Position numbers and translations under genes: made by a program
Shown: positions 15,501-57,931 of the stretch, in pieces
Layout: each line of letters starts with the position of its first letter
Numbering within the stretch: the stretch's first letter is position 1
The notes under the pieces: generated by a model
Seen by the model: the letters and a program-made list of their open reading frames with translations, nothing else
What the model was told of the DNA's origin: nothing
The model's database searches: none
Assembly (NCBI GenBank): GCA_002269645.1
Contig: NIVC01001586.1
Span: 18,076 to 82,075 of the forward strand
From: Macrostomum lignano
Taxonomy: Eukaryota
Length of the DNA stretch: 64,000 bases
Direction: 5' to 3'

Positions 15501-17470
15501 ATGAACTCCGCCCAGGCTGCCGAATCGCTGGCCGCGATCTGCAACGGCACCGAGGCGATGGCCGCCTGCATCGAGGAGGCAATCTACAGCGTCACGGTCG
15601 AGACCAAGCTGTCCGAGAGCTTCTACCAGGCTGCCGCAGCCGGCTACATCGCGGTTCTGCTGTGCGCGGTGCTGGCCAACAGCCTCATGCTGTACGCCAT
15701 CCTGTCAACCTGGCGCGAGAGCCGGGCATCGAATTATCGCTGCTTCTATTTGAATTTGATCGTCTGCGACCTGCTGTCGGCGCTGCTGATCCTGCCGGCT
15801 AGCGGCCGCGACCAGATCGACGACCGCTGGCTGTTGGGCGAGGCCGGCTGCAAGGCGGTGCACGCGCTCAGCGTCTGCCTCATGTGCAGCAGCGTGCTGA
15901 CCCTCACCGGCGTCAGCTGGCTGCGCTGCCTCGGCGCCGGCCGGCTGACCTTCAACTGGATTGACAGGCGGCGCAGCCTCGGCCGCGAGCTGGCCGCCAT
16001 CGGTGCCATCTGGCTGCTGGCCGGCCTGGCCGCCTTGCCCGCTGGCGCGGTGTCCGAGCTGCAGGAGCAGTACGACGGCATCTCCGGCCACCTCGCGGAC
16101 AAACTGGACCGGCCAATCAGCTGGCCGGTGTGCCGAGAAAACTGGGGCAACCAGTCGGCGACAGAGGCCGACGCGGAGGGGCAGCGGCAGTTCAACGCCA
16201 GCTTCTGGTGAGCTCAGGCTGTTGCGCAACTTAAGCTCAAATTCAGATTGAGTTCGAACTTTTGCCCGCTGCAGAGAACTGGGGACATCAGAGTGCTGAA
16301 GTAGCAAAACTGTAGGCGGGCTGCGGCAGAGCACTAAGAGGGTAGGGACAGAGGGTAGTACAGAGGGTAGGGGCAGAGGGTAGCGACAGAGGGTAGGGAC
16401 AGAGGGTAGGGACAGAGGGTAGCGACAGAGGGTTAGGGATAGAGGGTAGGGACAGAGGGTAGGGACAGAGGGTAGGGACAGAGGGTTAGAGACAGAGGGT
16501 GGGACAGAGAGTAGGGACAGAGGGTAGGGACAGAGGGTAGGGACAGAGGGTGGGACAGAGGGTCGGAACAGAGGGTTAGAGACAGAGGGTGGGACAGAGA
16601 GTAGGGACAGAGGGTAGGGACAGAGGGTGGGACAGAGGGTAGGGACAGAGGTAGGGACAGAGCACAAAGGCAGACGCTGAGCATACCCATTAACCCACGG
16701 CCTGCAGGTACGGCCTGGCCATCCTATGCTTGGCCTTCCTCCTGCCGCTGCTCAGCCTGGCTGCCGCCTATTGCCGCATCTGCCGCGTCATCTACCTGTC
16801 CAACCGCATTCTGAACGCGCATCGTCGCTGGCAGGAGATGGTCAGCGCTGGCTACCGCGGTGCTGCGGACACGACCCTCGTACGGCTCAGCAGCCTGCAG
16901 CAGCGCCAGCAGCAGCAACAGCAGCAACAACAACAGAAGCAGCAGCAGCGCCAGCAGCAGCGGCGGCACCAGGCCACTCCGCCGCTGCCGCCATCCACCT
17001 GCAATGCCATCAGCCAGCGTCGCCGGCTGGCAACCTCTCGCCGAATGTTCCTCCTAGCCGTAGCCCTAGTGGTGATTTTCGCCGTCACCTGGCTGCCAAT
17101 CCAGTGCTTTCAGCTCATCCGGGCCCGCCCGGACTCCAGGGTGTGGAACGCTGAACTGTCGCACAAGTTGGCCTTCGTATTCCACCTGCTGGCGCTGTCG
17201 AACTGCCTCGTGAACCCCTGCTTCCTGGTGGCCACGCATTCGCCATACAGGCGCCGGCTTCGCCGTCTGGTTCGCAACTTCTACAGGCGCCGACGCCGGC
17301 ACGGCTGCTGCGTCTGTTGCCTGCTCTGCTTGTGCAACATCTTCGGCTCCTGTTGCGACTGTTGCTGCTGTGGCGGTCGCGACGGCAGAGACGGCTGCAA
17401 CACGTGCTGGCTGTGCCCGTTCCGGAAGCGAGCCGGGGACCGGCAGTTCGAGCTGAACGATCTCAGTTGA
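15501..17470 (+). CDS. Rhodopsin-family (class A) GPCR, NPY/NPF-type neuropeptide-receptor-like, 489 aa
   Basis: Exons 15501-16207 and 16708-17470 (phase-2 intron, TG|GTGAGC...CTGCAG|G), 1470 nt total. TM1 AN, TM2 NLIVCD, ECL1 WLLGEAGCK, TM4 W, ECL2 Cys, TM6 FAVTWLP, TM7 HLLALSNCLVNP. Confidence 0.92.
16335..16660 (+). repeat. 13-bp G-rich minisatellite (AGAGGGTAGGGAC)n in the GPCR intron
   Basis: About 24 units with two GGG runs each. Confidence 0.93.
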
Positions 17471-24076: not shown

Positions 24077-24481
24077 AGCCCGTGCAGTTTTCACCCCGTT
24101 GAAACAATGGTGCAGAAAAGTCCAAGCCATGAAATCCTTTCCGCCTCTTTAAAGAGGCTTGCAGACAGAAATGGGAAATTTGGAGAACAAAGAGGCGAAC
24201 GTTTAGGGAGCCATATTTGGAGGGAAAATCTAACAAAATCAGTATTTCTAATTAAATAGACAGACCTGCAGCATCAGTAAAAAGAGGCTTCATATATGGT
24301 ACAACAGAAATTTGGCCCTTTTAAATAATTAGCTCGTATAGAAAAGTGAGAAGTAGATTTTGTTCGAGTTGTCTAGTTTCGGTGCTGGGAGGGCTGAATA
24401 AGCGCGCCTGAGATAAGCGCGCATGTGTATTCTTTACGATTTGACATAGATAGCGCGCACAGGCAGAAGCGCGCAAACGCG

Positions 24482-24550
24482 GCAGTGACACAAGTGCGCA
24501 GACAATTTTGACGGTAGTGACACAAGAGCGCAGACCATTTCGACGGTAGT
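24482..24550. repeat. 32-bp minisatellite, left remnant, split by the LTR element
   Basis: GTAGTGACACAAGAGCGCAGACCATTTCGACG units; continues at 28919. Confidence 0.88.
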
Positions 24551-27500
24551 TGTTGTGGGTTGATGGCTTTGCCATAGACATTTTTGTTACGCGACTGCGT
24601 TGATGAATTGAACCATGCTATTGAGTTATGAAATAAATGATAGACGCGTCAGAGGTCAACAGACCGCTAGACTGACAATTGCCAAAGGCTAAAGCCAAAA
24701 GCACAACAGTGGCGTCGGCAAGCATAGGCTACGAAAATGCCTGGAAGTACGCCAGCATCGCCAACTAAAGGAATTGGTAAAACGGTTTCGAGCGACAAAG
24801 CACCACCGCTTGCGATCTCGTCGAAATCAGTCCAAGCGACAAAGTTGCAACAGCGACAGCGCAGAATCCAAGCGCACAAGTATCGAGAGGACAGCAAGTT
24901 GACATCGAAAAACTCGATGAAAGTTCGAACTTCCAGAGGTGGTTGGACCGATTCACACTGTGCAGCGAACTCAACGGCTGGCAGGACGACACGAAAAACA
25001 AGCTGCTGCTGATGAAGCTCAGCACCAAGCTGTACGACGCATTGGCAGATCGAGCCGCTCCCAAGAAGCCGGGAGAAAAGAGCTTCGATGAACTGACCAA
25101 ACTACTGGCCAGCATCCTGGAACCAAAGACGTTCGTCATGGCTGAGAGATTCAATTTCCAGCATATCACTGGCACGGCATCAATGAGCATTCGTGAGTAT
25201 GCACAGCAACTCTGCATGCAAGCAGACAAGTGTCAGTTTGGCCTATCCAGAGATGAGAGACTGAGAGATCAGCTCGTATTCGGTTTGAATGACAAGGTGG
25301 CCATCAGCAAGTTATTGGAACAGGACTTCAGCACCCTCACGTTTGAGACAGCTATCAACATCGCTGAGGCGCACCAGAACGTATCACAAACGCAAATACT
25401 AAAGGGTTGCACCAGTCAGCCGCAGTCTTCTGAAGTAATGAAAATTTCAGCATCGGTGGCCAGAGGCTCCCACTCTACAAGCTCCAAGTGTGGCAGATGT
25501 GGCACAATGCATGGCTCCAATGGAGGGTGTCCTGCGAAAGGAAAAACGTGCAACAAACGTGGCATGCAAAACCACTTCGCAACAGTTTGCAAAACGAAAT
25601 CAACTGGTTTTGGCAAAGGCCGAAAATCGTTCAAAAGCCCGTCAGCATCTGGTCAATTTAGGCGAGCTGCAGTGTGGCCAAGGACCACAAGCTTTGTAGA
25701 TGCAAGCGAAGCTGAACAGGAGGATTGTTTTCATATTCGACATCCCGTTGATAGCTACACCGTGCCTGTTAGGCTCAGACACACGAGCGGGTCGATGCTT
25801 AGCGTGAACGCACAAATCGATACTGGGGCAGGAGTTTCGGTAATGTCAAAAACGATCTGGAAACGATTGGGTTGTCCAAAGCTGACACCTACAGACACTG
25901 TTCTGACAACATACGCTGATACGCAAATGAAGGTCTTTGGAACACACGAAACTGAGTTGGAGTACAATGACGAGTTCATTCCAATCACATTCTTCATTGT
26001 GGAATCGCAGAGGAACTTTGCTCTGGTTGGCCGAGACAAGCTCAATTTCACGCTAAACGCTGTAGACAACAACTGCACATCGGCAACCCAGTCATGCGAA
26101 TTTCCACCAGTAACTCTTAAGATCAAGGAAGGAACCACTCCAATTCATTGCAAACCCAGGCCGCTACCCTTCGCACTCAGACAGGGAGTCAAGGATGAAA
26201 TCGATCGGTTGCTTGAAGAAGACACCATCAAGCCCGTCAAGTTCAGTGAATGGGCCTCACCAATTGTCGTGGTCAAGAAACCTTCTGGAAAGCTCAGACT
26301 TTGCGTCGACTACAAGGTGACAATCAATTCTCATCTTATCAACGATTCATATCCGATGCCTGCACCTGACGAAGTGATTGCAACTGCTGCTGGCAGCCGG
26401 ATATACACTCGTCTAGACCTCAGCTTATCACTAAGAAAGTGAAAGCTTAACACTTTCACTTAAAAGCTTATCACCAGAAAGCTTATCACCAGATCCCACT
26501 AGATGAAGCTTCCAAAGAGCTGACAGTAATGTCAACACCATTTGGGATGTTCGCTTTCAACAAGCTTCCGTTCGGAGTGAAAACAGCACCTGCGATCTTC
26601 CAGCGGTACATTAGCCAAGTCCTACAAGGAATTCCTGGCGTCATTGCCTACGTAGACGACATATTGATATGCGGCAAAGGCGTAGAACAATTGGCAGTTC
26701 GCGAGACGGAAGTATTGCATCGACTAAACCAGCAAGGATTGAAGATCAACACGGCGAAAAGTGAATTCCGCAAGACTTCGATCAAGTTTCTAGGCTACTT
26801 ATTGGAAGGAGATCAGCTCAAGCCGGACCCAGCCAAAGTGAAGGCAATCCAGGACATGACACCACCGCAGAACGTTGGCGAGCTTGAATCCTTCCTGGGT
26901 CTCGTAAATTTTAGCGGCAAGTTCATCAGAAACCTAGCTGCACTGACCAAGCCTCTCAATCGACTAAGAAAGAAAAATGAGGACTTCGTGTGGACAAAGG
27001 AGTGTCAAATAGCATTTGACAAAATCAAGGTCACTCTCTCTGATCAATCGAGTCTTCAAATATTTGATCCGGAGAAGCCCATTGAACTGGAATGCGACAG
27101 TTCTCAGCGAGCTCTGGGCGGAGTGTTGACACAAAGCGGTCAAGTCGTGCTGTACATGAGCAAGACTCTGTCTGACGCCGAAACAAAATATTCGCAAATA
27201 GAGCGTGAAGGCCTGGCACTGGTTTGGTGCATTCAAAGATGCCATCGGTTCTTGGATGGCCGGAGGTTCACACTGATAACTGATCACCGGCCCCTCACAT
27301 ACATATTCGCGCCAGACAAACAGCTGCCCACCAGAGTTTCAGCTCGACTACAACGATGGGCAATCATACTAGCTGCTTATGACTTTGACATACAGTGTCG
27401 ACCATCAAAGCTAATGCTGTCGGATGCGCTATCTCGACTGGTGCCCGCTAAGCCGAATGCACAGACAGCATCGATCGGACTCCTCGAAGCTGACAACCCG

Positions 27501-28918
27501 GGAGTAATTCAGCTGGATCGCATTGCACACGCAACCAGAGAGGACCCGGAGTTCAGATGCCTGGGCGCAGCCATAATTAACAATAATCTATTTGACGACC
27601 CACACCTACTCAGCTACTCAAAGGTTCAAGATGAGCTAACTGTCAATGATGGAATTATTTACAGAATGAACAGAATTGTATTGCCTCGTGTCCTGAGAGA
27701 AAGTGCCCTGGCAGCTGTACACTCAACGCACCTTGGGGTGGAAAAGTCAAAGTCGATTTTGAGGGAACAGTTCTGGTGGCCACAGATGGACCGTGACATC
27801 GCTGACTACATTGGACGATGCAACGTGTGCAACCCGTACAAGCCCAGAAATAAGAACTTTCGGCACTCGTGGCCAGAACCTGACAACCCCTGGGAGCGAG
27901 TGCACATTGATTTTGCCGGTCCGATAGAGGGCAAGTACCTACTCATCATTGTGGATGCGCACTCGAGCTACCCGGAAGTCTTCATCACGAGCGACATGAA
28001 GGCCGACACAGTCATTTCCAGACTTAGAAGATTGTTCTCACAACAGGGGGTGCCCAAGTGTCTCGTGTCAGACAACGGCCCAGTTTTGTGAGCGAAGCGG
28101 TGACCGGCTGGCTCACCCAGATTGGCTGTTCGCACATCACAACGCCCGCCTACCATCCACAGAGCAACGGCATTGCAGAGCGAATGGTGCGAACCGTCAA
28201 AGAGACAATCAAGACCAATGGTTTATCCCAAAGAAGTATTGACAGATTTCTACTGTTCTACAGAGCTGCCAAAGGGAAGCAGCAAGCATCACCGTCCGAG
28301 TTGTTGAACGGCAGACAAATAAGACTCCCCATCTCGGAGAGCAGCACTCAGTCCAAGTGGATCCCAGGAGAATCACTCATCTACCGTGCATCGAGTTCTC
28401 ATGAGCCACGAACTGTGAGATTCGCCAAAATGCTTGGCAGCAACACAGCAGTCGTCACCACAGAGACTGGACGAAATCTAAAGACCCACCTCGATCAACT
28501 ACGAATCGGTGAGGTACCTGAGGCTCACGGAACTACGGAAATGGGGGATTCCAAGCCCGGTGGCAGCAGTCCAAGTGACGACGGCCAACAGACGCGTCCG
28601 TCATCGACAGACACTGAGATACTACCGGGAACAGAACAAGCTGAGAGAGCACAACAGCAACAGACTGAGGTTGGAGTGACGCGAACGCTTGGCCAAGAAA
28701 ACTAGAATTTTTTATCGCACCTGAGTGATAATTGTACACCTACCTATAGAAGAGGGAGGGTGTTGTGGGTTGATGGCTTTGCCAAAGACATTTTTGTTAC
28801 GCGACTGCGTTGATGAATTGAACCATGCTATTGAGTTATGGAATAAATGATAGACGCGTCAGAGGTCAACAGACCGCTAGACTGACAATTTCCAAAGGCT
28901 AAAGCCAAAAGCACAACA
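24551..28918 (+). mobile_element. Full-length Ty3/Gypsy LTR retrotransposon (4368 bp), disabled
   Basis: LTRs 24551-24708 and 28761-28918 (158 bp, TGTTGTG...CACAACA, 3 differences seen); GTAGT duplicated at 24546-24550 and 28919-28923; PBS-like GTGGCGTCGG after the 5' LTR; PPT AGAAGAGGGAGGG; domain order gag-PR-RT-RH-IN. Confidence 0.97.
24737..28705 (+). pseudogene. gag-pol of the Gypsy element, broken into three or four frames
   Basis: CCHC knuckle CGRCGTMH...C, protease IDTGA, RT LRLCVDY and YVDD, RNase H ECDSS and YSQIEREGLA, integrase H..HLG...C..C, HIDFAGP, SDNG, PQSNGIAER. Insertion with stop at ~26423-26478, frameshift at ~28082, no in-frame gag ATG. Confidence 0.93.
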
Positions 28919-29370
28919 GTAGTGACACAAGAGCGCAGATCATTTTGACGGTAGTGACACAAGAGCGCAGACCATTTTGACGGTAGTGACACAAGAGCGC
29001 AGATCATTTTGACGGTAGTGACACAAGAGCGCAGACCATTTTGACGGTAGTGACACAAGAGCGCAGACCATTTCGACGGTAGTGACACAAGAGCGCAGAC
29101 CATTTCGACGGTAGTGACACAAGAGCGCAGACCATTTCGACGGTAGTGACACAAGAGCGCAGACCATTTCGACGGTAGTGACACAAGAGCGCAGACCATT
29201 TCGACGGTAGTGACACAAGAGCGCAGACCATTTTGACGGTAGCTTAAACCGTGTCTATTTGTGTAAAGAAACTGACTACGTGCAGAATACAAGTGTACGG
29301 AAGCAGTGTCACAAGAGCGCAGACCATTTCGATGGAAGTGTCACAAAAGCGCAGACCATTTCGACGGTAG
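28919..29370. repeat. 32-bp minisatellite, right part (~10 copies to 29240, then diverged units)
   Basis: Period 32 (GTAGT at 29111 and 29143). Confidence 0.93.
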
Positions 29371-30843: not shown

Positions 30844-31343
30844 TATGCCAATTACACGCCTGCCTAAGTGGTTCATCTACGGTTGCCCAGCCTGTTCAAA
30901 CAGCGTGTGCTCTCTAGCGTTGCTAGAGTCATTAATAATATTAACGGTAGCTATATAGATAGTATGTGTTTTGGATAACCAATCAAGAATAATGTTGTGT
31001 ACTTAAGAGGCATAGAGGCGAGTTCGAGCGAAAGATCAAAAGTCCGTCTACTCGTAGACAGCTTCATTAGGATAGATGAGGAGCTTCAATTTGGCTAATT
31101 ATTAATCTAATTATTAATGTTCCTTTACGTAATACTGTTAAAACTAATGACGCATCGGATGCACAATATTGACACAGCGACAACCTAAAGAAGCTATATT
31201 AAATTTAGAGTCTCAGTAGATTTTTGTGGGTGCTTGCAATTATCTGACCGACGTATTTTCAGAATTAGAAGCACACCCAGCATGCTCCGTGGCTTTATAT
31301 TGTAAAATCGAAATCCAATTTTATTCAGTACCTAATTGCTCGC

Positions 31344-34300
31344 CTACTCATCATACTCATTCACAAGTACACTAGTGGAGCCTTCAGGAGTCGATACATT
31401 CGCCAGCAGGTCGTACTCATCCTCAACTACTCCAAAGTAAGTTGCAGGAGTCGATGCACTCGCCAGCAGGTCGTACTCATCCTCAACTACTCCAATGTGA
31501 GTTGTAGGAGTCGATGCACTCGCCAGCAGGTCGTACTCATCCTCAACTACTCCAACGTGAGTTGCAGGAGTCGATACATTCGCCAGCAGGTCGTACTCAT
31601 CCTCAACTACTCCAATGTGAGTTGTAGGAGTCGATGCACTCGCCAGCAGGTCGTACTCATCCTCAACTACTCCAAAGTAAGTTGCAGGAGTCGATGCACT
31701 CGCCAGCAGGTCGTACTCATCCTCAACTACTCCAACGTGAGTTGCAGGATTCGATGCACTCGCCAGCAGGTCGTACTCATTCTCAACTACTCCAACGTGA
31801 GTTGCAGGAGTCGATGCACTCGCCAGCACGTCGTACTCATTCTCAACTACTCCAACGTGAGTTGCAGGAGTCGATGCACTCGCCAGCACGTCGTACTCAT
31901 TCTCAACTACTCCGGAGTGTGGCTTGACAATTGGAGGAGTACCACTCCCGCGGTGGCATGAATGCCCGTCAACAACCGCTCTCGGGGATTTCTGGGACAG
32001 TTTGGACAGAGCAATGAATTTGCTGTTACATATGCCATCCGCATCAGCTTTGACAGGTAGCTCTTTCGCTGCATTGCGACGACAGCAGAGCAATCTAAAC
32101 GAGACGCAGAGACCAGAAAAAACCAACAAGCTGCCCAGAATGAAGCTCGTTAGAAACTGCGGCAAGCCAAAACCTCCCGGATTGTCGTCTTCTGCAATGG
32201 TTTCGGCATTCAAATACATGCCTAATGTGTTAAATAAAAGTGGTCACCCAGTCAGTCAGTGGTCAACCATGTAGATGACCTGTTTGTACAATATACTTCG
32301 TACAAGCTTAGAGACTAAATGTATAGACTCGTTCAGACCATATTCAAATGAGACTGCAGTTTTGGAATGATCATGCGGCTTATACATATTTTTCGTGGCT
32401 ATGCAAACCAGGAGTGACAATGTTCGTTTGATTCATCATGATTCACGAAGACCATTCTCACCTTGCGATGGCCTGCGAAGTGTCGAACTAACAGTGTCCA
32501 GGATGAGCCCTGACTGATTCACCAGACACTGGACGGACGCCGAATCAGCCCACTCCTTCGGAACAATCAGCGAAAACGTGCTGCTTGTGTTACTCGACTG
32601 AAAGTGGTGCAGTTTTATATTTCTTATTAGTATGAACGCAAAGATAGCTATTTGAATTTTTAGCAAACGAGCCATCCTATACTTGAAGTAGATTATCCTG
32701 CAATTGTTCTTTTCGACAAAGAGAATTTTCAACTACTTAAGCTATAGAATGGATCCCGAAGCCGACTAAAACAACTAGAATGGGACCTAGATGAGATGTC
32801 TTGGCGTTTCTAGTCGATTGTTCTGATAAGTTATCAATTGCAGCTTTGCTTCTATAGCTTAATTTGTCATCCTCTTTGTAGTGATCCGCTAGTTTGGTGT
32901 TAGGCGTCGCACTATTGTCAGCGGCTTCCCTCGCCCTCGCCCTCGCCCTAAGTCGCTGTCTGCCGCTGGTCAGCCTCCCTCCCTTTTTTTCTGCCTGTTC
33001 TCTGTCGCCCCCCACCTCTTCTCTGGGCTCTTGCTTGCAGCCACGAGCTTCTCTGCTGTGGCCTGCTCTGCGTTTCGTTCCTGTCCTGAGGTCAAGCTGG
33101 CGGCCTGTTTCCCTTGTCAGGTGAGCAAGTCACTTGACAAGTCTTGTTTTCTCGAAGTCCTAAAGTGCAGTAGACATGTTTACTGTACTTGTTGGTCCAT
33201 GTTTACAGGAGGAATCACGTGCTTCAGGGCCCTTGTCTTCTCTAAGGTAATAGGTGACTCATGTTTCTAAAAATAGATAATGAGTCATGCGGCCCTGTGC
33301 ACTTTACCCGCAGACCCTGCCTTCTCTAAGGCACGAGGTCCGGCGCACACTGGCGCAGCGGGGATTCCCCTATAAATACGTGCCCCTCACCCTTGGTTCA
33401 GTCAAGGAGTGCTTCTTTAGTCTAGTTTTCCAGACTTCGTTCAGTTGCCCATTTAACCATTTGGAAGCCAAAGGCCTGCACTGCAGGCCATACCGAAACG
33501 GTCCAGAAACCCAGAGATTGAAAAATGTCTATGGCATCAAAAACCATCTCCCAATCACTAAAGCAAGTGCCCAGTATGGCCTGCTGTGCAGGCCATGACT
33601 GATTTAAAGACGTCCATTATGCATTTCCATTGTGTTTTCACTCAAATGGGAAATGTTAAAGGGGAAATAAAGCGTGGATGAATTAGCATGGATCTGGACA
33701 GAGACCAGGATTTCCGGGACATTGGCTGCAGCAAAATACTGTCTTCTTAGCTGGAACGTCAGGTTTCAAATTCGGAATCGTTTGCTTGGGCGAGTCTGGG
33801 CTTCCGTTGCTGGGAGTCGTCCGTGTATATGTGGTATCCTTCGCCCAGCACTTCGCGACTAAGCTCAGCAACAACTCTCGCTCTCTTCCTCGCCATTTTC
33901 TGCACTCTCCTGCTGGAACTCCCTGACTGCCAACCACATTCGCTCATTAGTCCATGTGACAAGACTGTGGTGAGAAACTCTTCAGTCAGGATCAATTTCT
34001 GGATCCATGCCTTCCGACTCCGTTTCTGACTCAAAAACCGTCGAGTCATTGCTTGATAAAGCGTCTTCCGAATCGGAATCGAGTCCCAGTCTACGCAAGG
34101 CGTCACTTTTAGCTGTCCTATTCGGCCGAGTAAAAGCCATTTGTGGGTAGGAAGGTTTGAACAGGAGCTAGCTGAAAAACTATGTGATATACTTTACTTC
34201 TGGGCTTCTAGGGTGTGCACTCGATTCAGCAAAAAAGACAAATTTGTCTATGGACTGCTCTGCAGGCCTTTGGGCTTTTAAGCCATCTTACAGAACCAAG

Positions 34301-37300
34301 CTTGGGCGCGAAGTGGTTAAGCTATCTGTAATTGGCCTGACTAAACTTAGACGCCCAAGCCTAAGGGAGGCTAACACTGCCTTCTCAGCCACCCGCTGAG
34401 CCCGGCGGGATCTGCTGAACAGGACCAGGACGCCTTGTTCATTAATCTGCAGATCTGCACGCTGTGCTGAGTTCGTTGACTTGTTTATTTCGTTCCGACG
34501 GGAAGCTCACCTCACCGAAGGCCGAGACATGAAGGAACTGGTGGCAGCACTACCGACGCTACTAAGAGCTAATAAGAAAGCTTCCGAGAGAAGAGGCTCG
34601 AGACTTAAGGTAAAGCTTAAGTGACTAAATCGGGAAGCAAAAAGCGATCTACTTCGTTGGTGGCAGCGGTGGGATTCAAAGACCTACCATGCCACCTTGA
34701 GACAACCCTAAGTACTTCATCTTTTATCAATAGTGCACTTTCAGACTTGAGGAAGGGTAGCTGTGGTACACTGTCGGACCTGAGGAAGGGTAGCTGTGGT
34801 GCACTGTCGGACCTGAGGGAGGGTAGCTGTGGTACACTGTCGGACCTGAGGAAGGGTAGCTGTGGTGCACTGTCGGACCTGAGGGAGGGTAGCTGTGGTG
34901 CGCTGTCGGATCTGAGGAAGGGTAGCTGTGGTGCACTGTCGGACCTGAGGAAGGGTAGCTGTGGTGCGCTATCGGACCTGAGGGAGGGTAGCTGTGGTGC
35001 ACTGTCGGACCTGAGGGAGGGTAGCTGTGGTGCGCTATCGGACCTGAGGGAGGGTAGCTGTGGTGCACTGTCGGACCTGAGGGAGGGTAGCTGTGGTGCA
35101 CTGTCGGACCTGAGGGAGGGTAGCTGTGGTGCACTGTCGGACCTGAGGGAGGGTAGCTGTGGTGCACTGTCGGACCTGAGGGAGGGTAGCTGTGGTGCAC
35201 TGTCGGACCTGAGGGAGGGTAGCTGTGGTGCACTGTCGGACCTGAGGGAGGGTAGCTGTGGTGCACTGTCGGACCTGAGGGAGGGTGGCGCACACCTCAA
35301 AAGACAAATTAGTCGCTTACAGACACAGATGGCAGACGACTCCGCCCATGCCTATGCTTTAGGTGGCAGGTGTGGGTTGTAGCCAAACAACTTCTGCTCC
35401 GAAGAGTTGGAATCGTGCTCACAGTGAATGTGAATGTGAAGCCAGGCCGCCAATCAGTTTCTGGCGGCTGATTGAACAGCGTTTTGCACGGATCTGCGGG
35501 AGATTGTGGAGACGGTACTTGCACTATCTAGTGGCTATATCTGGACTCGAACCTGTGTCCTTCGGTGCAAGAGAGCAATGCAGGGCACTCGCCCTCTATA
35601 AAAAACTGAACGATACACAAAAGGCTGAGTGCTATGCAGTTTCACAGTGAGCGCGCACAAATCAACTTCGGTATGCTCTCGGTTATTTGCGACTCCTCCG
35701 AAGTTCTCTCCAGAGAGTAGGCGCACGAAATGCTCCCGCCGACCATCGACTCGTTGACTCGTAGGCTGAACGTGCTGCTGCGAAATTCCAGTCCGTCACC
35801 CACGTCAGTCAACTGCGGGATTCAGTGAATTGAATGTATTGAAGTGCACTTAAGTGTGGTTCATTGTCTTGGGTTGCAATTGGAGTCGACTGGAATGCAT
35901 TGGAGTGTGTTGCAGTGCAGCCCAAACTACCTCTTCTGCACCCCAACGAACCACAAAGAGCTGAGGATAAAGTCCCATCCCACTCAACATAAAAACCCCC
36001 GACTCGAACATTGTCATGCTTGGTCTCCAAGATCAGCTTCGGCGAGCCAGCTCGATCAATCAGCAGGCAGTGGTGCAGCGGCCTTGGAAACGCCGGCTCG
36101 GTACTGAAGGTCACCAGCGCTTCGGTCCCCACGACCCACACGGATCCGCCCATGTCCAGATGGACAGCTTTCGGCTTTGCTGCGGAGTATTTTGAGTAAA
36201 AATTATTTACTTTTTACTTATGCTTCTGCTGCCCACAATGACTCTTAAGACGCATAAAGGATCATGAGCAAACAAATCGCTCAAGAAGAATTCTGTACTC
36301 GCAAATCGTGTAATTTTTACTGCAGAATACATTAGCTAGATAGGGCTTCGGAGTTTCCTTGACATTAAAAAGATGTCAAGCTTCAGAGAAACTATATTTG
36401 TTAATTTTATAGAGTAGTAGAACAGACAGTGTCAACGAGATTTGCCCGCAATGCTTTTTTCCTGCAGCGCATTTTTTCACGTCGCAGATTTTGTCTGCAC
36501 TGCCTCCCCAATGCTTAGTAAGTCTTATTAAAGAGATTTGGGGAACAAAGCGACATGGAATATGCATGAATTAATAGATGCATGTATATACAGAACTGAG
36601 TGCCTACAAGAAAAATATAAATTTGATATGCAGTTACTATCAAAGCGTTTTGATCGGATAAATCTCTTTATTAAGACTTAATAAGCATTAGGGGGCATGC
36701 AAAATATAGCTGTCACGTGACTAAATGCGCCGCAAGAAAAAAAGCATTTCGGGCAAATCTCGGCGGGAAAAATCTCGGCGAGCAATTCACTCGCGGGCAA
36801 ATTCCACTGCGGGCAAAGCTCGGCGGGCAATTCTCGTGCTCCCGAACAGAAGACTCAGAAATTCACCTAAAACTCGTTGTTCTAGAACTGGTTGTTAAAT
36901 AATGAAGCAGTGAAGCACAGCTACCCTCCCTCACGTCCGACATTGCACCACTCCCACAGCTACAATCCCTCAGGTCCGACAGTGCACCACAGCTACCCTT
37001 CCTCAGGTCCGACAGTGCACCACAGCTACCCTTCCTCAGGTCCGACAGTGCACCACAGCTACCCTTCCTCAGGTCCGACAGTGCACCACAGCTACCCTTC
37101 CTCAGGTCTGACAGTGCACCACAGCTACCCTTCCTCAGGTCCGACAGTGCACCACAGCTACCCTTCCTCAGGTCCGACAGTGCACCACAGCTACCCTTCC
37201 TCAGGTCGACAGCGCACTACAGCTACCCTCCCTCAGGTCGACAGCGCACTACAGCTACCCTACTTAACGTAGGAAAATTAACGATTTGAAAGTGCAGCGA

Positions 37301-40300
37301 ACTTCTTTTTTGCTTGATTTTCTATTGTAGAAGCACGAATGCATGTACAGAAGAACCGGGCTGCCTACAGATGAACCCGATCGTCCTATTGAATCGGCCA
37401 CTGGCTCCGCTGGCGCACCGGAAGCTGCAGTCCAATTGACTGTTGCGAAATCGGCCGTTGATCGTCAGCAGGTAGGCCGCCGCACTGCCTGCGGCTTCCT
37501 AAAAATATTGTAAAAGTCATTCACGTGTACCACTGAAAACTGCTTTTTTAGGAAGCCAGTTCCTCTTTTCTCGTTCTGTTTACTGTTTTATAGCTTTTTT
37601 TTCTTTTCGTGCCATCCTAAGGGAGCGCTCCTCCTTTCTGGAGACCTCCCTTTGTGCGCCAGTCACGTGGTGGCCGTACTCCCTCTACATGCATCTCGTA
37701 CCAGTTACGCTCGTAGGTTGGTGCCGCTTGATAAACTCCTGCAAACAGCCTTCGACAAGCAAACATCCTGCAAGCAAACATCCTGCAAACAAACATCCTG
37801 CAAACAAGCATCCTGCAAGCAAACATCCTGCAAACAAACATACTGCAAGCAAACATCCTGCAAGCAAACATCCTGCAAACAAACATCCTGCAAGCAAACA
37901 TCCTGCAAGCAAACATACTGCAAACAAACATCCTGCAAGCAAACTTCCAGCAAAGAAGCATCCTGCAAACAAACATCCTGCAAACAAGCATCCTGAAAGC
38001 AAACATCCTGCAAGCAAACATCCTGCAAACAAACATCCTGCAAGCAAACATCCTGCAAACAAACATCCTGCAAGCAAACATCCTGCAAGCAAACATCCTG
38101 CAAGCAAACATCCTGCAAACAAACATCCTGCAAGCAAACTTCCACCAAACAAGCATCCTGCAAGCAAACATCCTGCAAGCAAACATCCTGCAAACAAGCA
38201 TCCTGCAAGCAAACATCCTGCAAGCAAACATCCTGCAAGCAAACATCCTGCAAGCAAACATCCTGCAAGCAAACATCCTGCAAACAAGCATCCTGCAAGC
38301 AAACATCCTGCAAGAAAACATCCTGCAAGCAAACATCCTGCAAGCAAACATACTGCAAACAAACATCCTGCAAGCAAACATCCTGCAAACAAGCATTCTG
38401 CAACCAAACATCCTGCAAGCAAACATCCTGCAAGCAAACATCCTGCAAACAAGCATCCTGCAAGCAAACATTCTGCAAACAAACATCCTGCAAGCAAACA
38501 TCCTGCAAGCAAACATCCTGCAAGCAAACATCCTGCAAGCAAACATCCTGCAAGCAAACATCCTGCAAGCAAGCATGCTGCAAGCAAACATTCTGCAAAC
38601 AAACATCCTGCAAGCAAACATCCTGCAAGCAAACATCCTGCAAGCAAACATCCTGCAAGCAAACATCCTGCAAACAAACATCCTGCAAACAAACATCCTG
38701 CAAACAAACATCCTGCAAACAAACATCCTGCAAGCAAACATCCTGCAAACAAACATCCTGCAAACAAGCATCCTGCAAGCAAACATCCTGCAAGCAAACA
38801 TCCTGCAACCAAACATCCTGCAAGCAAACATCCTGCAAACAAGCATCCTGCAAACAAGCATCCTGCAAGCAAACATCCTGCAAGCAAACATCCTGCAAAC
38901 AAACATCCTGCAAACAAGCATCCTGCAAGCAAACATCCTGCAAGCAAACATCCTGCAACCAAACATCCTGCAAGCAAACATCCTGCAAGCAAACATCCTG
39001 CAAGCAAACATCCTGCAAGCAAACATCCTGCAAACAAGCATCCTGCAAGCAAACATCCTGCAAGAAAACATCCTGCAAGCAAACATCCTGCAAGCAAACA
39101 TACTGCAAACAAACATCCTGCAAACAAACATCCTGCAAACAAGCATCCTGCAAACAAGCATCCTGCAAGCAAACATTCTGCAAACAAACATCCTGCAAGC
39201 AAACATCCTGCAAGCAAACATCCTGCAAGCAAACATTCTGCAAACAAACATCCTGCAAGCAAACATCCTGCAAGCAAACATCCTGCAAGCAAACATCCTG
39301 CAAACAAACATCCTGCAAACAAACATCCTTCAAGCAAACATCCTGCAAGCAAACATCCTGCAAGCAAACATCCTGCAAGCAAGCATGCTGCAAGCAAACA
39401 TTCTGCAAGCAAACATCCTGCAAACAAACATCCTGCAAGCAAACATCCTTTAAGCAAACATCCTGCAAACAAACATCCTGCAAACAAACATTCTGCAAAA
39501 AAACATCCTGCAAGCAAACATCCTGCAAACAAACATCCTGCAAGCAAACATCCTGCAAGCAAATATCCTGCAAGCAAACATTCTGCAAGCAAATATCCTG
39601 CAAGCAAACATCCTGCAAGCAAATATCCTGCAAGCAAACATCCTGCAAACAAGCATCCTGCAAGCAAACATTCTGCAAACAAACATCCTGAAAGCAAACA
39701 TCCTGCAAGCAAACATCCTGCAAGCAAACATCCTGCAAGCAAACGCAAGCAAACATCCTGCAAACAAGCATCCTGCAAGCAAACATCCTGCAAACAAGCA
39801 TCCTGCAAGCAAACATCCTGCAAACAAGCATCCTGCAAGCAAACATCCTGCAAACAAGCATCCTGCAAGCAAACATCCTGCAAACAAGCATCCTGCAAGC
39901 AAACATCCTGCAAACAAGCATCCTGCAAGCAAACATCCTGCAAACAAGCATCCTGCAAGCAAACATCCTGCAAACAAGCATCCTGCAAGCAAACATTCTG
40001 CAAACAAACGTCCTGCAAACAAACATCCTGCAAACAAACATTCGGCAGAAAACATCCTGCAAGCAAACATCCTGCAAACAAACATTCGGCAGAAAACATC
40101 CTGCAAACAAACATCCTGCAAACAAACATTCGGCAGAAAACATCTGGCTCTCATAAGAAACTAATAAATGTTTCGCCCCTTTTGCTGGCAAGTATGCAAC
40201 GAATTGTGAGCTTGTCCTTACTAACAAGAATATCTTAAACCGTTATTAATTTACTGCAACTCACAAACTTGAAATTGCCCACGAGTGGTTGGAGGCTGCA

Positions 40301-42830
40301 CAGCGGAGTCTTCAGAGTCTGGCAGGGCAGGCAGGCCACCAGCATGGTGCCAGGCCGAAGGCGGTCCAGGCCGACCGCTGAACAGACCGACTGGCTGCTG
40401 CGGCTGACCAGCTGAACAGCTGCATCATCTGAGAGAGAGAGAGCGCGCACACAGCGCAGTTGATTAGCGGACTCATCATCATATTCTTTTGAATTCTTTA
40501 CTCGCCCATTACTTAATATGTTTTCAATTATCACTTCGGTCCCCTGGCCATTCCACTCTCTCACTCGGTGCCATTCCCTCTTCTCTCACTCGGTGCCATT
40601 CCCTCTTCTCTCACTCGGTGCCATTCCCTCTGGTGGATACAACGGAAAGTTGTCACGCGATGACATGACCTCTTTGCAATCACTGGTAACTGGCTTACCA
40701 AAATTGATTTGTAATCCAGCGAACTCCAGCCGCTTATCAGTTTCATTCTGCACAAATCTTCTCAGAAGAATAAAGCGAGTCGGCTGCAAATATTGATTTA
40801 ATTCAAGGTTACGCATTTAGATTGATAGTTCTGAAGTTAATTTAATAGAGACACGAAAACTTCATTTTGGCGCCAAAGCTCCCAATATTTATTGATAACT
40901 AAAAAAAATAAATATGGGATCTGTGGAATGGGATCGGGATGGGACGGGGATGGACCGGGAGGGGACCTGTGGAATGGGACCTGGAGATGGAACCCTGTGG
41001 AATGGAATCGGGATGGGACCTGTGGAATGGGATCGGGATGGGACCTGTGGAATGGGATCGGGATGGGACCTGTGGAATGGGATCGGGATGGGACCTGTGG
41101 AATGGGACCGGGATGGGACCTGTGGAATGGGACCAGGAGGGGACCTGTGGAATGGGACCTGGAGATGGAACCCTGTGGAATGGGATCGGGATGGGACCTG
41201 TGGAATGGGACCTGGAGATGGAACCCTGTGGAATGGGATCGGGATGGGACCTGTGGAATGGGATCGGGATGGGACCTGTGGAATGGGACCGGGATGGGAC
41301 CTGTGGAATGGGATCGGGATTGGTCCTCTTGAGTGTATATCACACAAACGCTAAGTCAGCATTCCGAGCGTGAACTCCCAAAACTAAAGTGGCGCGTGAG
41401 ATTAGTTCAGAAAAGGGAGAATTTTCCCAATATTAGGAAGTGAATTTTTTTGCTAATAGCACGAAGGCTCAATTCCATGGACAGCAGCTGACCTTTGGGC
41501 ACACCGGGCCGCACACGAGTCCGCACTTCACCTGCTGGCGCAGCGGTCCAGAAGGCCGGGCAGCGGCGGTACGGCCGCAAGTAGAAAATTTGTCCACAGC
41601 CACAGTGGCTTTGCAGGAGCCTGACACGGGCTTTAACTGGATTGATTCCGACTGCTCATCGCTGATTAGCACCTCCAAGTTGCTTGCTCTCACCGGAGCT
41701 GCTTGTTAGGGGATATGAGATTGGAGCGAAATTATAGCAGCAGACCGGAGAGAAAACATTGGATTTCCAGGCTAATCTGACTTGACACTATATAGCTACC
41801 CTGACCCAACACCACCCTGACAACCACCCTGACACAACACCATTCTGACTCAACACCACCCTGACAACCAACCCCTGACCCAGAACAAACCGTCAGGCTG
41901 GGCGTGAACCGTCACGGACTGAAGATGAACAGCTCTGGACAGACGGAGCAGCAGCCATTGGTACCCGAATTCGTCCGGCGCGTTGCCCGAACGGAACGAC
42001 ACGGCGGTCGTGTCGGCCACGGCTCGAACCGAGGCGCTGTAGCATCGCTCCTCAAATGTGGACGACTGCCAGGCTTCGATCATGTTCAGATTTGAGTGAC
42101 TGGCACCGGCGCCTGTGCAGGATATTGACGGCGCAGAAAAGAAATGTAATACTCGTATATATGCTGCCGTATATATTTAGATAAGACAATTTTAAGATAC
42201 TATTGATTTTACGCTTTTTAGGGTGAAGTAGCCACCCATGAATCACTGGATATGGATACAGTACGGAGTTAAGCTTGTGTTCAGAGGGAGATTTGTGCGG
42301 ATTTTAGGCCAGGACATGTGGAGCTCGCACCAACATCGATCAACTTCTAATCAAAGATGAGATATATTGCCACTTAATTTGTGCTGCAGTTCATGTCACC
42401 AACACAGAGCCAAATAAAATGGTACAAAAGTACATGTAGTCCATTTCTAGCTACTTAATATAACTAGCGATCCCTATTATGGATCAAGAAATGCAACCTA
42501 CCGTTGAATAGCTGCACCAGCTGGATGCCAATAACTGCTAGCACTTGTGCATTGGCAATTAAACAGTTAAGAGAAATGCAAACCTGCAACCAAGATCTCG
42601 GCTGCATCACAATAGCGCTTAACAGAATAACTACGAAGACTTTAGGCCCAAACGCTCACGGCTAGAAGATACGGGTAATAAATAACGTTTCTATCAGAAT
42701 TTAACTTTTGTTTTAACAAACATTTTCTGCACCCGATACTGTACCAACAGCATGGTCAGCTGACTTACGCAACCAAACAGATGCGCAGGTGTGCAAGCGT
42801 CAGAAAGAGAACTTTCAAGTCAGCCCACAG
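31344..42830 (-). CDS. Type I membrane receptor: signal peptide, F-type-lectin (FTP/F5-8C)-like domain, two Ig-like domains, TM helix, nine tandem acidic YDxL motifs (~690 aa)
   Basis: Exons ?-42769, 42630-42584, 42112-41891, 41698-41532, 40783-40699, 40428-40265, 37498-37369, 36179-36010, 32597-32462, 32221-31344; all AG/GT bounded, with junction phases 2,1,1,0,1,0,1,0,1 joining into one stop-free frame. Start codon not located; domain names are motif-based inference. Confidence 0.8.
31385..31915 (-). repeat. Coding 60-bp minisatellite, 9 units, encoding GVVE(D/N)EYD(L/V)LASASTP..
   Basis: Lies in the last exon downstream of the TM segment; 20-aa period. Confidence 0.95.
33453..34281 (-). 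mobile_element. Internally deleted, non-autonomous piggyBac element
   Basis: TTAA at 33453-33456 and 34278-34281; imperfect inverted termini (AAAGGCCTGCACTGCAGGCCATA and TATGGACTGCTCTGCAGGCCTTT); acidic N-terminal fragment DSDSEDALSSNDSTVFESETE; C-terminal Cys-rich motif KKTVFCCSQCPGNPGLCPDPC. Confidence 0.65.
34741..35287 (+). repeat. 33-bp minisatellite, ~16.5 copies
   Basis: Unit CTGTCGGACCTGAGGGAGGGTAGCTGTGGTGCA. Confidence 0.96.
36436..36843. mobile_element. MITE-like palindromic element with subterminal short repeats
   Basis: 36436-36474 pairs with ~36723-36761 (about 4 mismatches); inner AAGTCTTATTAAAGAGATTT and AAATCTCTTTATTAAGACTT pair; ends in ATTCTCGTGCTCCC like 14947-14960. Confidence 0.6.
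36912..37261 (-). repeat. 33-bp minisatellite, inverted copy of the 34741-35287 array (~10 units)
   Basis: AGTGCACCACAGCTACCCTTCCTCAGGTCCGAC is the reverse complement of the GAGGAAGGG variant unit. Confidence 0.95.
37757..40145. repeat. 15-bp minisatellite (AAACATCCTGCAAGC)n, ~155 copies, intronic
   Basis: Source of the 570-850-aa KHPAS / CRMFA / LQDVC ORFs. Confidence 0.97.
40550..40630. repeat. 25-bp triple repeat next to a donor site
   Basis: TCACTCGGTG at 40561, 40586 and 40611. Confidence 0.85.
40915..41322. repeat. ~25-bp G-rich minisatellite (GGGATGGGACCTGTGGAATGGGATC)
   Basis: Direct periodicity with a 35-bp variant unit. Confidence 0.93.
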
Positions 42831-43439
42831 GCTTGCAGATTGTATAAGATAATCAAGCTGGTAGCAATTGCTTTAGCTGTGCATGCCTGGCGTGTGAAAG
42901 TGGCCAAGACAAGATTTACTCATGGTTTATAGTTTATCACTAGGAGCCGAAAACGCACTTGGAAGATAGTAAAGCTATCAGTAACACGACACTTTAGCCA
43001 GTCTATGTTCGAGGCAGAAAAAGGTAAACCACCCACATCAATTAGAATTATATTTACCAAGACAAAATCATCAACTGTAAGTCATTCTTTGCAAGACAAT
43101 ATAGTTATTCAAGTATTTAAAAAATCTTGCTAACTCGTCAGATCAGGCCTAAATATCGATCTCATACGATACTCTGTGTATGGATAAAATCAATTATCAA
43201 CAATGATGTCTAATTAAGTTATATTGACTGAGCAAAGTGGACAGTCTGGCCATACCAAGAAGCGAATGACATTTGGGAGATGAAATCAGATTGCATATTA
43301 GTCTGCTTGTCATTAATTAACCGTAGGGAATTGTAGATATTGAATAAAGTTATTAATACAGCAATTAAATAACCTTACTATCGTTAGCGAGTGCTTAATA
43401 ACTTAATTAGAGTGGAGCTCTGTTCTCGGGACGCTAAAA

Positions 43440-44700
43440 CTGGATCCAGTCACGTGATTGGACACCGCACGAATAGAAATCACGAAATGTAACGAGATTG
43501 GAAACCACGAGACTCGAAATGGAAAAAATTGGATACCACGTGACTGAAAATCATGCAACTGGAAATCACCCGATGATGATATCACGTGACTGGAAATCCC
43601 CCGATCGGATATCCCGTGACTTACCCGATTGGAAGTCACGTGACTGGAAATTTTTCGGATAAGAAATCTCGTGACTGAAAATTACCCGATTGGAAATCAC
43701 ATGACTGGAAATTACCCGATTGGAAATCACATGACTGGAAATTACCCGATTGGAAATCACATGACTGGAAATTACCCGATTGGAAATCACATGACTGGAA
43801 ATTACCCGATTGGAAATCATGTGACTGGAAATTACCCGATTGGAAGTCACGTGACTGGAGATTACCCGATTAGAAATCACGTAACTGGAAATTACCCGAT
43901 TGGAAATCACGTGACTGAAAATTACCAATTAAAATTCACGTGACTGGAAATTACCCAATTGGAAATCACGTGACTGAAAATTACCAATTAAAAGTTACGT
44001 GACTGGAAATTACCCAATTAGAAGTCACATGATTGGAAATTACCCAATTAGAAGTCACGTGACTGGAAATTACCCAATTAAGTCACGTGACTGGAAATTA
44101 ACCGATTAGAAATCACCCTATGGGATATCACGTGACTGGAAATTACCCGATTAAAAATCACCCTATGGGATATCACATTACTAGAAATTACCCGATTAGA
44201 AATCACCCTATGGGATATCACGTGACTGGAAATTACCCGATTAAAAATCACCCTATGGGATATCACATTACTAGAAATTACCCGATTAGAAATCACCCGA
44301 TGGGATATCACATTACTAGAAATTACCCGATTAGAAATCACCCTATGGGATATCACGTGACTGGAAATTACCCGATTAAAAATCACCCTATGGGATATCA
44401 CGTGACTGGAAATTACCCGATTAAAAATCACCCGATGGAATATCACATTACTAGAAATTACCCGATTAAAAATCACCCGATGGAATATCACATTACTAGA
44501 AATTACCCGATTAGAAATCACCCTATGGGATATCACGTGACTGGAAATTACCCGATTAGAAATCACCCTATGGGATATCACGTGACTGGAAATTACCCGA
44601 TTAGAAATCACCCTATGGGATATCACGTGACTGGAAATTACCCGATTAAAAATCACCCGATGGAATATCACATTACTAGAAATTAACCGATTAGAAATTA
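43440..44700. repeat. Minisatellite with 30-bp then 45-bp units carrying TCACGTGA and TGGAAATTACCC
   Basis: Period 30 over 43660-44090 and period 45 over 44100-44690. Confidence 0.93.
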
Positions 44701-45399
44701 CCCGTTATGAATCATCTGATAGGCATAATATCACTAGAACTCCAATCACATGTTCGCTGCTAAAAATGACAACACATTTTAAATTTCGCACAAGCCCAGC
44801 GCACCATTCAGATTCCCCACCCCCCTAACCTAACACAGCTGACTACTGACTAAACCAGCTAGGCATTGTTCCAGAAACCTCCGATTCCAAATCATACGCG
44901 CAAACATTGTAATAATCGAAATTTGATAAACACAGGGATAATCAACTAACCAATAAAGATAACACACAAAAAAGCGATAAACTGAATGGACAGTTAAGCG
45001 CCACATCAATTTAAAAATCATAGCCGCATCAAACAGAGGTCAGCGAGGCCCATAGAGACAAAAACTTGTGCGCGAATGCAGAATTTGGTTGGCTCATTAA
45101 CTTTGGCAACTTTAGTCGGTCAAATATGAGCAAATCTATTCTCATTTATCATAATCAATTGGGCTGAATGAAGAATATTACAACTGACTTACAAAGCAGA
45201 TCAGTCACTTCCGACGAGGGCGGATTATAGAAATACTGTGTACGAATCGAATGAAAACTTATTGTAAAAATGAAAAAGCTTTGATAGGCTTTCAGTAGTT
45301 TGAATTTTTCTTATTTTTTATCATGAAAGCTAGTCGCAAACTGCTACTATTAGTAATTTGAAGGAGCATGTTTATTAGATCGGCTTTGTTAACTAGATG

Positions 45400-45790
45400 G
45401 GTGTTCTGGTGGGTTCATTTTGCAGGTTGGGGTTCCGGTGGGTTCATTTTGCAGGTTGGGGTGTTCCGGTGGGTTTATTTTGCAGGTTGGGGAGTTCCGG
45501 TGGGTTCATTTTGCAGGTTGGGGTTCCGGTGGGTTCATTTTGCAGGTTGGGGAGTTCCGGTGGGTTCATTTTGCAGGTTGGGGTTCCGGTGGGTTCATTT
45601 TGCAGGTTGGGGTGTTCCGGTGGGTTCATTTTGCAGGTTGGGGTTCCGGTGGGTTCATTTTGCAGGTTGGGGTGTTCCGGTGGGTTCATTTTGCAGGTTG
45701 GGGTGTTCCGGTGGGTTCATTTTGCAGGTTGGAGTATTCCGGTGGGTTCATTTTGCAGGTTGGGGTGTTCCGGTGGGTTCATTTTGTAGG
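45400..45790. repeat. 29-32-bp minisatellite (GGTGGGTTCATTTTGCAGGTTGGGGTTCC)
   Basis: About 12 copies downstream of MGAT1. Confidence 0.93.
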
Positions 45791-46146
45791 ATGTCTCGAT
45801 GATTAATTCTACAATGTTTAAGCTGACTAACTTTTTTAATTAATAATATAAACAGATTGTATATCCTATTTTAATGAACCAGTATATCAGCTTAAAGCCT
45901 ACCGTTAGCATGCACAAAGCACAGCTGAAAGTCAATGAACTAACATAGCGCATTATGAGTTTAAAAGCATCAAACGCAGTATTCGCTAAGAGAAATGGAA
46001 AATAAGAAATCAGTAATAACTGCGAGAGACCAGAAATAGGCAATTTTTTAAAACACTAATTTCATAGCCGGTTACAGACACTCGGATAATAAAGGCAAGC
46101 CAATGAGATTAATTGAGGCAAATCTAAAAACAACAAAGCAAATCAA

Positions 46147-57379: not shown

Positions 57380-57931
<552 letters not shown>

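Follow-up and report, generated by a model that had tools for sequence, protein, structure and literature searches.

Tails with several tyrosine motifs and coding repeats with one motif in each unit have both been described. The adaptors LAT, PAG/Cbp and NTAL combine one transmembrane (TM) helix, juxtamembrane cysteines and a long multi-tyrosine scaffold tail with a very short ectodomain. The variable-number tandem repeats (VNTR) of DRD4 (exon 3, 48 bp) and PER3 (54 bp) and the EPIYA segments of CagA have units whose length is a multiple of three within the open reading frame (ORF), with a single short motif for docking or phosphorylation in each; they are documented to be polymorphic in copy number and to show a dose effect. 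We know of no endogenous receptor tail in which a YxxL motif has been amplified as a tandem repeat. In the vertebrate adaptor HGAL (GCSAM), the paired Y128/Y148 motifs bind SYK (PMC11518702), and in receptors with a hemITAM (half of an ITAM, the immunoreceptor tyrosine-based activation motif) the run of three acids before YxxL is needed for phosphorylation of the tyrosine (PMC3576117). Here we describe an array of nine 60-nucleotide (nt) units, each encoding one acidic YxxL motif, on the minus strand of a 64,000-nt stretch of DNA from the flatworm Macrostomum lignano (contig NIVC01001586.1, forward-strand positions 18,076 to 82,075; hereafter the window, with all positions counted from its first nucleotide).

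The reading that we favour, to which as a whole we assign a probability of about 0.35, is that a young coding minisatellite in the gene for an Ig-like single-pass membrane protein encodes a docking tail of acidic YxxL motifs, and that this tail would be read in a phosphotyrosine-dependent manner. One part of this statement is considerably firmer, namely that the array encodes the cytoplasmic tail of a single-pass membrane protein, which we consider quite likely. Tandem Repeats Finder (TRF) identified one array at 31385-31913, with a period of 60, 8.8 copies, 95% matches, 0% indels and a score of 932. On the minus strand this array reads as nine units of 20 amino acids (aa), VVE(D/N)EYD(L/V)LASASTPATHVG, with a tenth copy in degenerate form (NEYDE) and then a stop codon behind them; the unit consensus in the coding register is GVVE(D/N)EYD(L/V)LA(S/N)(A/V)S(T/N)P(A/T)T(H/Y)(V/I/F) (for the coordinates of all features see Table 1). 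The period is a multiple of three and the repeat stays in frame from the spliced exon to the stop, as in a coding VNTR. With up to two mismatches allowed, the 64-kb window contains 9 occurrences of a 30-nt unit core, all of them in the array, and dinucleotide shuffles give 0.

The nine units are 93-100% identical, carrying ENEYD(V/L)L in units 1-3 and EDEYDLL in units 4-9, and the tenth copy agrees with unit 1 at 20 of 30 nt (10 differ). Identical pairs are formed by units 1 and 2, 4 and 8 (TYF sub-variant), 5 and 7 (TTHI) and 6 and 9 (ANV, over 48 nt). An earlier note on this DNA, made from the letters alone, had described nine 20-aa acidic YxxL units with a terminal NEYDE and a recurrence of the sub-variants TYF, THI and ANV; TRF, the translation and the count of core occurrences bear out the former description, and the identities 4=8, 5=7 and 6=9 the latter. 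The order of the sub-variants, c-d-e-d-c-e, corresponds to no simple higher-order repeat and requires at least two exchange or conversion events. In units 4 and 8 (31674-31733 and 31434-31493, minus strand), the linked changes CAC>TAC and GTT>TTT create a second tyrosine, and in the resulting YDLL-x8-YFGV, which has Val, not Leu or Ile, at position +3, the tail shows its only ITAM-like spacing. Because the units are copies of one amplified unit, the nine motifs together have roughly the weight of a single independent observation, to which the older terminal copy adds.

The recovered part of the gene around the array consists of two coding exons separated by one intron. Between a canonical acceptor and the array, the frame is open through about 93 codons of unique sequence. 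The ORF as found mechanically (31344-32219, minus strand, 291 codons) opens with an ATG at 32219, but the junction between RPSQ and EDDNPGG in the UniProt fragment described below (P0121) requires exactly the GT and AG sites given in Table 1, so that the last exon starts at 32191 and this ATG is intronic; the 291-aa ORF was accordingly rejected as the real product, and an exact look-up of it was empty. The upstream exon has tttcag before it and GTGAGA after it, and shows an E-F strand pattern typical in appearance of Ig-like domains (FSLxV...DSASVQC) together with two NxS/T sites. The GC content is 51-54% in the two exons versus 32-40% in the intron and flanks (54% in the Ig-like exon and 32% in the 100 nt upstream of it). 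The TM segment coincides with a helix at ORF residues 20-51 in the AlphaFold2 model, and in the juxtamembrane sequence CC may represent a palmitoylation pair and RRN a positive-inside signal, by which the tail (245 aa, net charge -31) would be placed in the cytoplasm. Downstream of the stop an AATAAA hexamer follows, for which the chance of at least one occurrence in 40 nt is about 3% at the hexamer frequency of the window.

The splicing assigned here follows an independent gene model, which was identified by an exhaustive HMMER search against 1.84 billion representative proteins. The sole true relative is a 99-aa fragment from M. lignano (P0121; UniRef100_A0A1I8HFT5), an automatic model that is named 'Ig-like domain-containing protein' in UniProt. 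Its residues 46-99 are 100% identical to the translation of 32192-32031, and its residues 1-45 align to the Ig-like exon (32597-32463) with 2 mismatches, so that the UniProt model extends across the splice junction and 54 residues into the last exon. The other 37 matches were rejected as relatives, being unrelated proteins with S/T/A-rich repeats of about the same period that have at most 'STPATH' in common with the query and carry no acidic Tyr motif; no relative with a similar tail was present among the proteins searched. Word-indexed protein searches gave no match, either with the whole ORF, which was swamped by low-complexity candidates, or with the spliced non-repeat part, but these negatives are unreliable here, because A0A1I8HFT5 was missed despite 54 identical residues in the query. 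A metagenome scan for the unit gave 0 matches, and a literature search with the motif strings found no papers. The gene is best explained as one specific to the M. lignano lineage, with a putative Ig-like extracellular part.

Pfam detected no Ig domain in the Ig-like exon, and the label is that of UniProt; what speaks for an Ig-like domain is the UniProt name and the F-strand-like DSASVQC in one exon, the other half being absent from the exons recovered. Two candidates for further parts of the gene were rejected. The first is an in-frame ATG with MARLLKIQIAIFAFILI at 32598-32675 (minus strand), directly upstream of the Ig-like exon, which was considered as a signal peptide; it is more likely intron, because its GC content is 32%, the tttcag acceptor stands at the start of the exon and there is no acceptable cleavage site. 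The second is the ORF at 35645-35821, which has SSTFSLxV...C in common with the Ig-like exon (E-value 0.05); its position between two inverted 33-bp arrays makes it more likely to belong to a repeat element. These arrays (34733-35286 and 36908-37261) are reverse complements of each other (units 32/33) and enclose 35287-36907 as an inverted pair, which may be an element of the foldback type; no Pfam match was obtained for the ORFs in this interval.

The order of the predicted protein, from Ig-like exon through TM segment to tyrosine-motif tail, argues for phosphotyrosine-dependent reading. By analogy, the triacidic run that promotes phosphorylation in hemITAM receptors (PMC3576117) would point in the same direction, as would the comparison with HGAL, in which two acidic Tyr-x-x-Leu motifs likewise have their tyrosines 20 residues apart: a pair of units aligns to the HGAL profile, the profile requires the Tyr and the 20-residue spacing, and the HGAL pair binds SYK. 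Since the Y128/Y148 spacing of HGAL is also 20 residues, the long gap alone is no bar to a reader with tandem SH2 domains. As for the mechanism, slippage or unequal exchange may have expanded one C-terminal NEYD into ten acidic Tyr-x-x-Leu copies, and the resulting tail may be a multivalent platform for docking. EDEYDLL would be phosphorylated by a tyrosine kinase with a preference for acidic residues, after which SH2 proteins reading pYxxL would bind, with an avidity that would rise with unit number. A further extension is that an unstable unit number sets SH2 avidity and so provides a germline-heritable gain control on an Ig-like receptor, differing between individuals or homeologous copies; we regard this as improbable. 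The suggestion in the earlier note that copy number could be a heritable rheostat of signal strength is speculative. Heritable gain control by motif number is described for injected bacterial effectors, and to our knowledge for no endogenous animal receptor.

Each of the described systems shares some features with this locus and departs from it in others. HGAL is a small lipid-anchored adaptor, whereas the flatworm protein is predicted to be transmembrane and has no N-terminal lipidation segment. The hemITAM receptors CLEC-2, Dectin-1 and CLEC9A likewise place a single YxxL after a run of three acids, but these are C-type lectins of type II that carry their one motif close to the N-terminus, whereas here nine motifs stand in a C-terminal tail behind an Ig-like exon. 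LAT, PAG and NTAL resemble the flatworm protein in TM helix, juxtamembrane Cys and long multi-Tyr tail; in contrast, their Tyr motifs are diverse and not in tandem, and an Ig-like domain is encoded, at least in part, by the flatworm gene. A Pfam search found no similarity of the ORF to transmembrane adaptor proteins. The coding repeats of DRD4, PER3 and CagA share with the flatworm array its unit design, but their copy-number polymorphism and dose effect are documented, whereas here the sequence of one array has been read.

Several results weigh against a phosphotyrosine-read docking tail, some of them concerning the product, others the divergence of the units and others the motif itself. With respect to the product, no transcript, peptide or orthologue covering the array was found, the UniProt model ends 43 residues short of the array, and a search of 32590-46150 (Pfam on minus-strand ORFs of 32220-46150, patterns, and three frames by eye) gave neither an exon for the first Ig-like half nor a 5' end of the gene. 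The codon usage of the non-repeat part (log-odds -0.14, GC content at third positions 0.53) is indistinguishable from that of random ORFs of the window (-0.25 +/- 0.24) and unlike that of the neighbouring genes (+0.4). These results would suit the alternative that the array lies outside any functional protein, in a gene fragment that is decayed or not expressed, or in an artefact of gene prediction, with a frame that is open by chance, as would the lack of a signal peptide, the empty look-up, the absence of the gene from the NCBI proteins and the fragmentary, automatic nature of the UniProt entry. Two of the six frames of the array are open, the proposed minus-strand frame and one antisense frame, and an open frame alone means little, because the non-coding arrays of the window yield ORFs up to 849 aa long. 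We nevertheless consider this alternative unlikely, since the 93 or so open codons of unique sequence reach back to an acceptor that is used by an independent model, the TM helix is followed by CC-RRN, the stop stands directly after the array and AATAAA follows, and the GC content steps at the exon borders. The absence from GenBank has its own explanation: the Mlig_3_7 annotation excluded transcripts overlapping repeat annotations (PMC5730564), and the gene is missing from the NCBI proteins for that reason. The array is a real feature and very probably coding, and its gene was missed by standard annotation.

The divergence of the units also counts against selection on the array. The nine units differ in 8 columns with 9 changes, all at codon position 1 or 2, and none of the 9 is synonymous, whereas 27% would be expected to be so for all changes and 37% for transitions (p about 0.03-0.06 by our own arithmetic); since all 9 changes are non-synonymous, there is no sign of purifying selection on the spacers of the array. 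The array is young. The check proposed in the earlier note, whether changes favour synonymous sites and spare the Tyr codon, therefore failed with respect to synonymous sites; the Tyr codon is never hit. The Tyr, Leu at +3, Glu at -1 and -3 and Asp at +1 are invariant in 9/9 units, giving the core V-V-E-x-E-Y-D-x-L, and the two core changes (D/N at -2 and L/V at +2) are conservative. Of the 9 changes, 2 fall in the 27-nt motif core versus 7 in the 33-nt spacer, a trend that is not significant (binomial estimate, p about 0.15). Within NEYD, the terminal copy differs from unit 1 only by TAC>TAT and GAC>GAT, both synonymous, which hints, if only faintly, at a constraint on the motif as such. Asn at -2 occurs both in the three units at the 5' end and in the terminal copy, so that ENEYD was probably the original form and EDEYDLL probably the variant that spread.

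This pattern would also result from a neutral, recent expansion of the array within a coding tail, which as a disordered segment would accommodate slippage in a genome with minisatellite expansion throughout; the ancestral C-terminal NEYD might then have a function, but the copy number would not be tuned. The near-identity of the units, the complete lack of synonymous differences among them, the confinement of synonymous-only motif change to the old terminal copy and the absence of a similar tail from any relative in the exhaustive search all favour this explanation, and so does the repeat-rich setting. As many as 38 tandem arrays make up 27.5% of the window, and simple and tandem repeats account for 15% of the M. 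lignano genome as a whole (PMC5730564). The corresponding locus of a second assembly, Mlig_3_7, on contig NIVC01001989.1 (L001), is 97-99.8% identical to the window in unique sequence; the comparison reaches window position ~37046, ~5 kb short of the 60-bp array. All seven arrays common to the window and L001 differ in copy number, by haplotype or homeolog polymorphism or by assembly collapse, and the description in the earlier note of a genome prone to minisatellite turnover agrees with this, although assembly error may contribute. On the other side, neither an indel nor a stop interrupts the frame of the array along its 540 nt, and changes are fewer in the core than in the spacer, at the non-significant level given above. 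Overall, neutral expansion appears to us a doubtful account.

In order to compare the tail with described motifs, patterns were scanned on the spliced protein; the matches are to regular expressions and represent predicted motifs only. Nine YxxL motifs were found, at spliced-protein positions 145 to 305, and the tail thus contains the two YxxL/I that an ITAM comprises. In contrast, the canonical ITAM pattern Yxx[LI]x6-12Yxx[LI] gave 0 matches in the spliced protein, the gap being 16 residues, and the remark in the earlier note that this gap is too long for a canonical ITAM was therefore correct. Its suggested resemblance to the hemITAM was not borne out at the acid positions: the pattern [DE][DE][DE]xYxx[LI] gave 0 matches, since the hemITAM requires acids at -2 to -4 of YxxL (PMC3576117), whereas here six units carry acids at -1 to -3 and the other three only at -1 and -3, and the tail is C-terminal and the exon Ig-like, not lectin. 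The patterns of the immunoreceptor tyrosine-based inhibitory motif (ITIM), [SIVL]xYxx[IVL], and switch motif (ITSM), TxYxx[VI], also gave 0 matches, with Asp or Asn standing at -2, as did YxN, YxxM, YDx[PV] and NPxY. Against an axis of Syk and ITAM in flatworms stands the Syk of schistosomes, SmTK4, which is reportedly without the conserved ITAM-binding SH2 sequence (PMC2820527).

The similarity to HGAL was examined with the Pfam family HGAL (PF15666), which matched the whole ORF at 45.2 bits, but over profile positions 53-86 of 88 only and in 3 stretches. A peptide of two units scored 13.1 bits (E-value 0.11, cut-off 27), a further point against our reading, and no match was obtained for a single unit, for a Tyr>Phe exchange, for a shorter or longer spacer or for the N/V variant. 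Homology with HGAL was rejected on these grounds; the match is that of a motif inflated by repetition, the 45-bit total being the sum of the repeats.

By pattern, the motif fits readers of unphosphorylated peptides equally well. YxxPhi was found in 9/9 core motifs (11 matches in the scan, including the two extra YFGV sites of the TYF units), while the canonical and xLIR patterns of the LC3-interacting region (LIR) matched 6/9 units, those with EDEYDLL, and neither matched the three ENEYD units (patterns from PMC5119064); the acidic-dileucine pattern [DE]xxxL[LI] matched the same 6/9 units. The tail may therefore be coding but with its motif peptide GVVEDEYDLLASAS read without phosphorylation, either as a tandem LIR that binds Atg8 in selective autophagy or as YxxPhi/[DE]xxxL[LI] adaptor-sorting signals for endocytosis and lysosomal delivery, and the acidic flanks and low-confidence linker suit such short linear motifs. 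Among receptors of selective autophagy that are anchored in membranes and have an acidic LIR, the ER-phagy receptor FAM134B carries DDFELL, and RTN3 has several LIRs; both are reticulon-type endoplasmic reticulum (ER) proteins without an Ig-like ectodomain. The flatworm protein resembles them in its membrane anchor and in the possibility of several LIRs in one tail, EDEYDLL fitting the pattern. It differs from them in that its Ig-like ectodomain with N-glycosylation sites suggests a surface receptor and not an organelle autophagy receptor, and in that neither the LIR nor the dileucine pattern matches ENEYD[V/L]L in its three N-terminal units. Tyr is the rarest aromatic residue in LIRs, we know of no case of nine tandem sorting signals, and regular-expression matches to LIR and sorting motifs are common by chance. 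Such phosphorylation-independent reading is possible in our estimation, although we would not expect it.

With regard to the original claim of a signalling tail, a coding and cytoplasmic tail is very probable, whereas the signalling part draws on a short motif for which the ITAM, hemITAM and ITIM definitions failed. From motif resemblance the signalling interpretation is plausible, and the choice of reader among phosphotyrosine signalling, sorting and autophagy lies beyond what a sequence can decide.

A structural alternative was suggested by the AlphaFold2 model, which was made from the single sequence with no alignment. The model consists of the TM helix, a linker of low confidence and a beta-hairpin stack over the repeats, with two strands in each 20-aa unit, a predicted local distance difference test score (pLDDT) of 70-85 and a predicted TM-score (pTM) of 0.58, from which the repeats might be taken to fold as a beta-hairpin stack or beta-solenoid and not to form a disordered array of motifs. 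Near-perfect repeats often give artefactual models of this kind. A Foldseek search against the PDB gave no significant match, the best being generic beta-helices and curli-type amyloids (E-value 0.8, TM-score at most 0.33), and every strand would carry E or D. The beta-stack is a probable repeat artefact, because the net charge is -31 and no alignment stands behind the model, and we consider a folded stack highly improbable.

The wider window contains exons of several recognizable genes (Table 1). The exon 46150-46977 (minus strand) of the MGAT1 gene is 100% identical to M. lignano BOX15_Mlig029797g1. In the GPCR gene, a CAG run at 16888-16972 encodes poly-Gln between the two halves of the 7tm_1 domain and represents the second repeat within coding sequence of the window. 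A Ty3/gypsy-type retrotransposon at 24943-28705, with aspartyl protease, reverse transcriptase, RNase H and integrase spread over three ORFs, is flanked by direct arrays of one 32-bp unit (24480-24550 and 28919-29242; 31/32 identity), which are probably minisatellites carried in the long terminal repeats of the element.

Table 1. Coordinates of the Ig-like gene with its repeat tail, of other genes, and of the arrays compared with contig L001 (window positions).
Feature	Position	Strand	Remarks
Penultimate coding exon	32462-32597	minus	136 nt, SSNTSSTFSLIVPKEWADSASVQCLVNQSGLILDTVSSTLRRPSQ; Ig-like C-terminal half, by appearance
Intron	32192-32461	minus	270 nt; GT 32461-32460 to AG 32193-32192; GC 39%
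Last coding exon, stop included	31344-32191	minus	stub, TM helix, CC-RRN, linker, array, degenerate unit, TAG
Transmembrane segment	32097-32156	minus	FLTSFILGSLLVFSGLCVSF; top Kyte-Doolittle 19-residue window of the protein, 2.05
Juxtamembrane CC then RRN (RLLCC-RRN)	32073-32087	minus	read from sequence
Non-repeat linker	31914-32072	minus	53 aa, AAKELPVKADADGICNSKF...PPIVKPHS; AlphaFold2 pLDDT <50 (ORF residues 46-100)
Nine 60-nt units	31374-31913	minus	20 aa each, one acidic YxxL per unit
Degenerate tenth copy	31344-31373	minus	SVLVNEYDE + TAG stop, in register; last 30 nt
AATAAA polyadenylation-signal hexamer	31320-31325	minus	18 nt downstream of stop
DEP-domain exon	5602-6153	plus	Dishevelled-like
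Rhodopsin-family G-protein-coupled receptor (GPCR)	15228-17467	plus	two ORF blocks
GlcNAc-transferase I (MGAT1) gene	46150-50181	minus	three exons; first intron with 1.3-kb 29-bp minisatellite
Histidine acid phosphatase exons	60995-63039	minus	
ACTT array	57380-57807		107 copies in window, 55 in L001
29-mer array (MGAT1 intron)	48489-49812		45.7 copies in window, 34.7 in L001
31-mer array	45398-45790		12.9 copies in window, 23.8 in L001
30-mer array	43558-44704		36.9 copies in window, 14.8 in L001
25-mer array	40914-41327		16.4 copies in window, 79.4 in L001
25-mer array	40557-40631		3 copies in window, 6 in L001
15-mer array	37756-40144		159.8 copies in window, 107.8 in L001

If the array is only a neutral expansion, it would be an ordinary by-product of a repeat-rich genome. 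Because transcripts overlapping repeats were removed from the annotation, M. lignano genes with coding minisatellites are systematically absent from the protein sets (PMC5730564), and transgenesis is established in this species (PMC5730564). Provided that the tail is expressed and that SH2 proteins read it, the gene would encode an endogenous receptor in which an unstable coding repeat determines how many docking motifs there are, and it would represent an ITAM-like system in a lophotrochozoan, a group in which signalling of the immunoreceptor type is almost unstudied.

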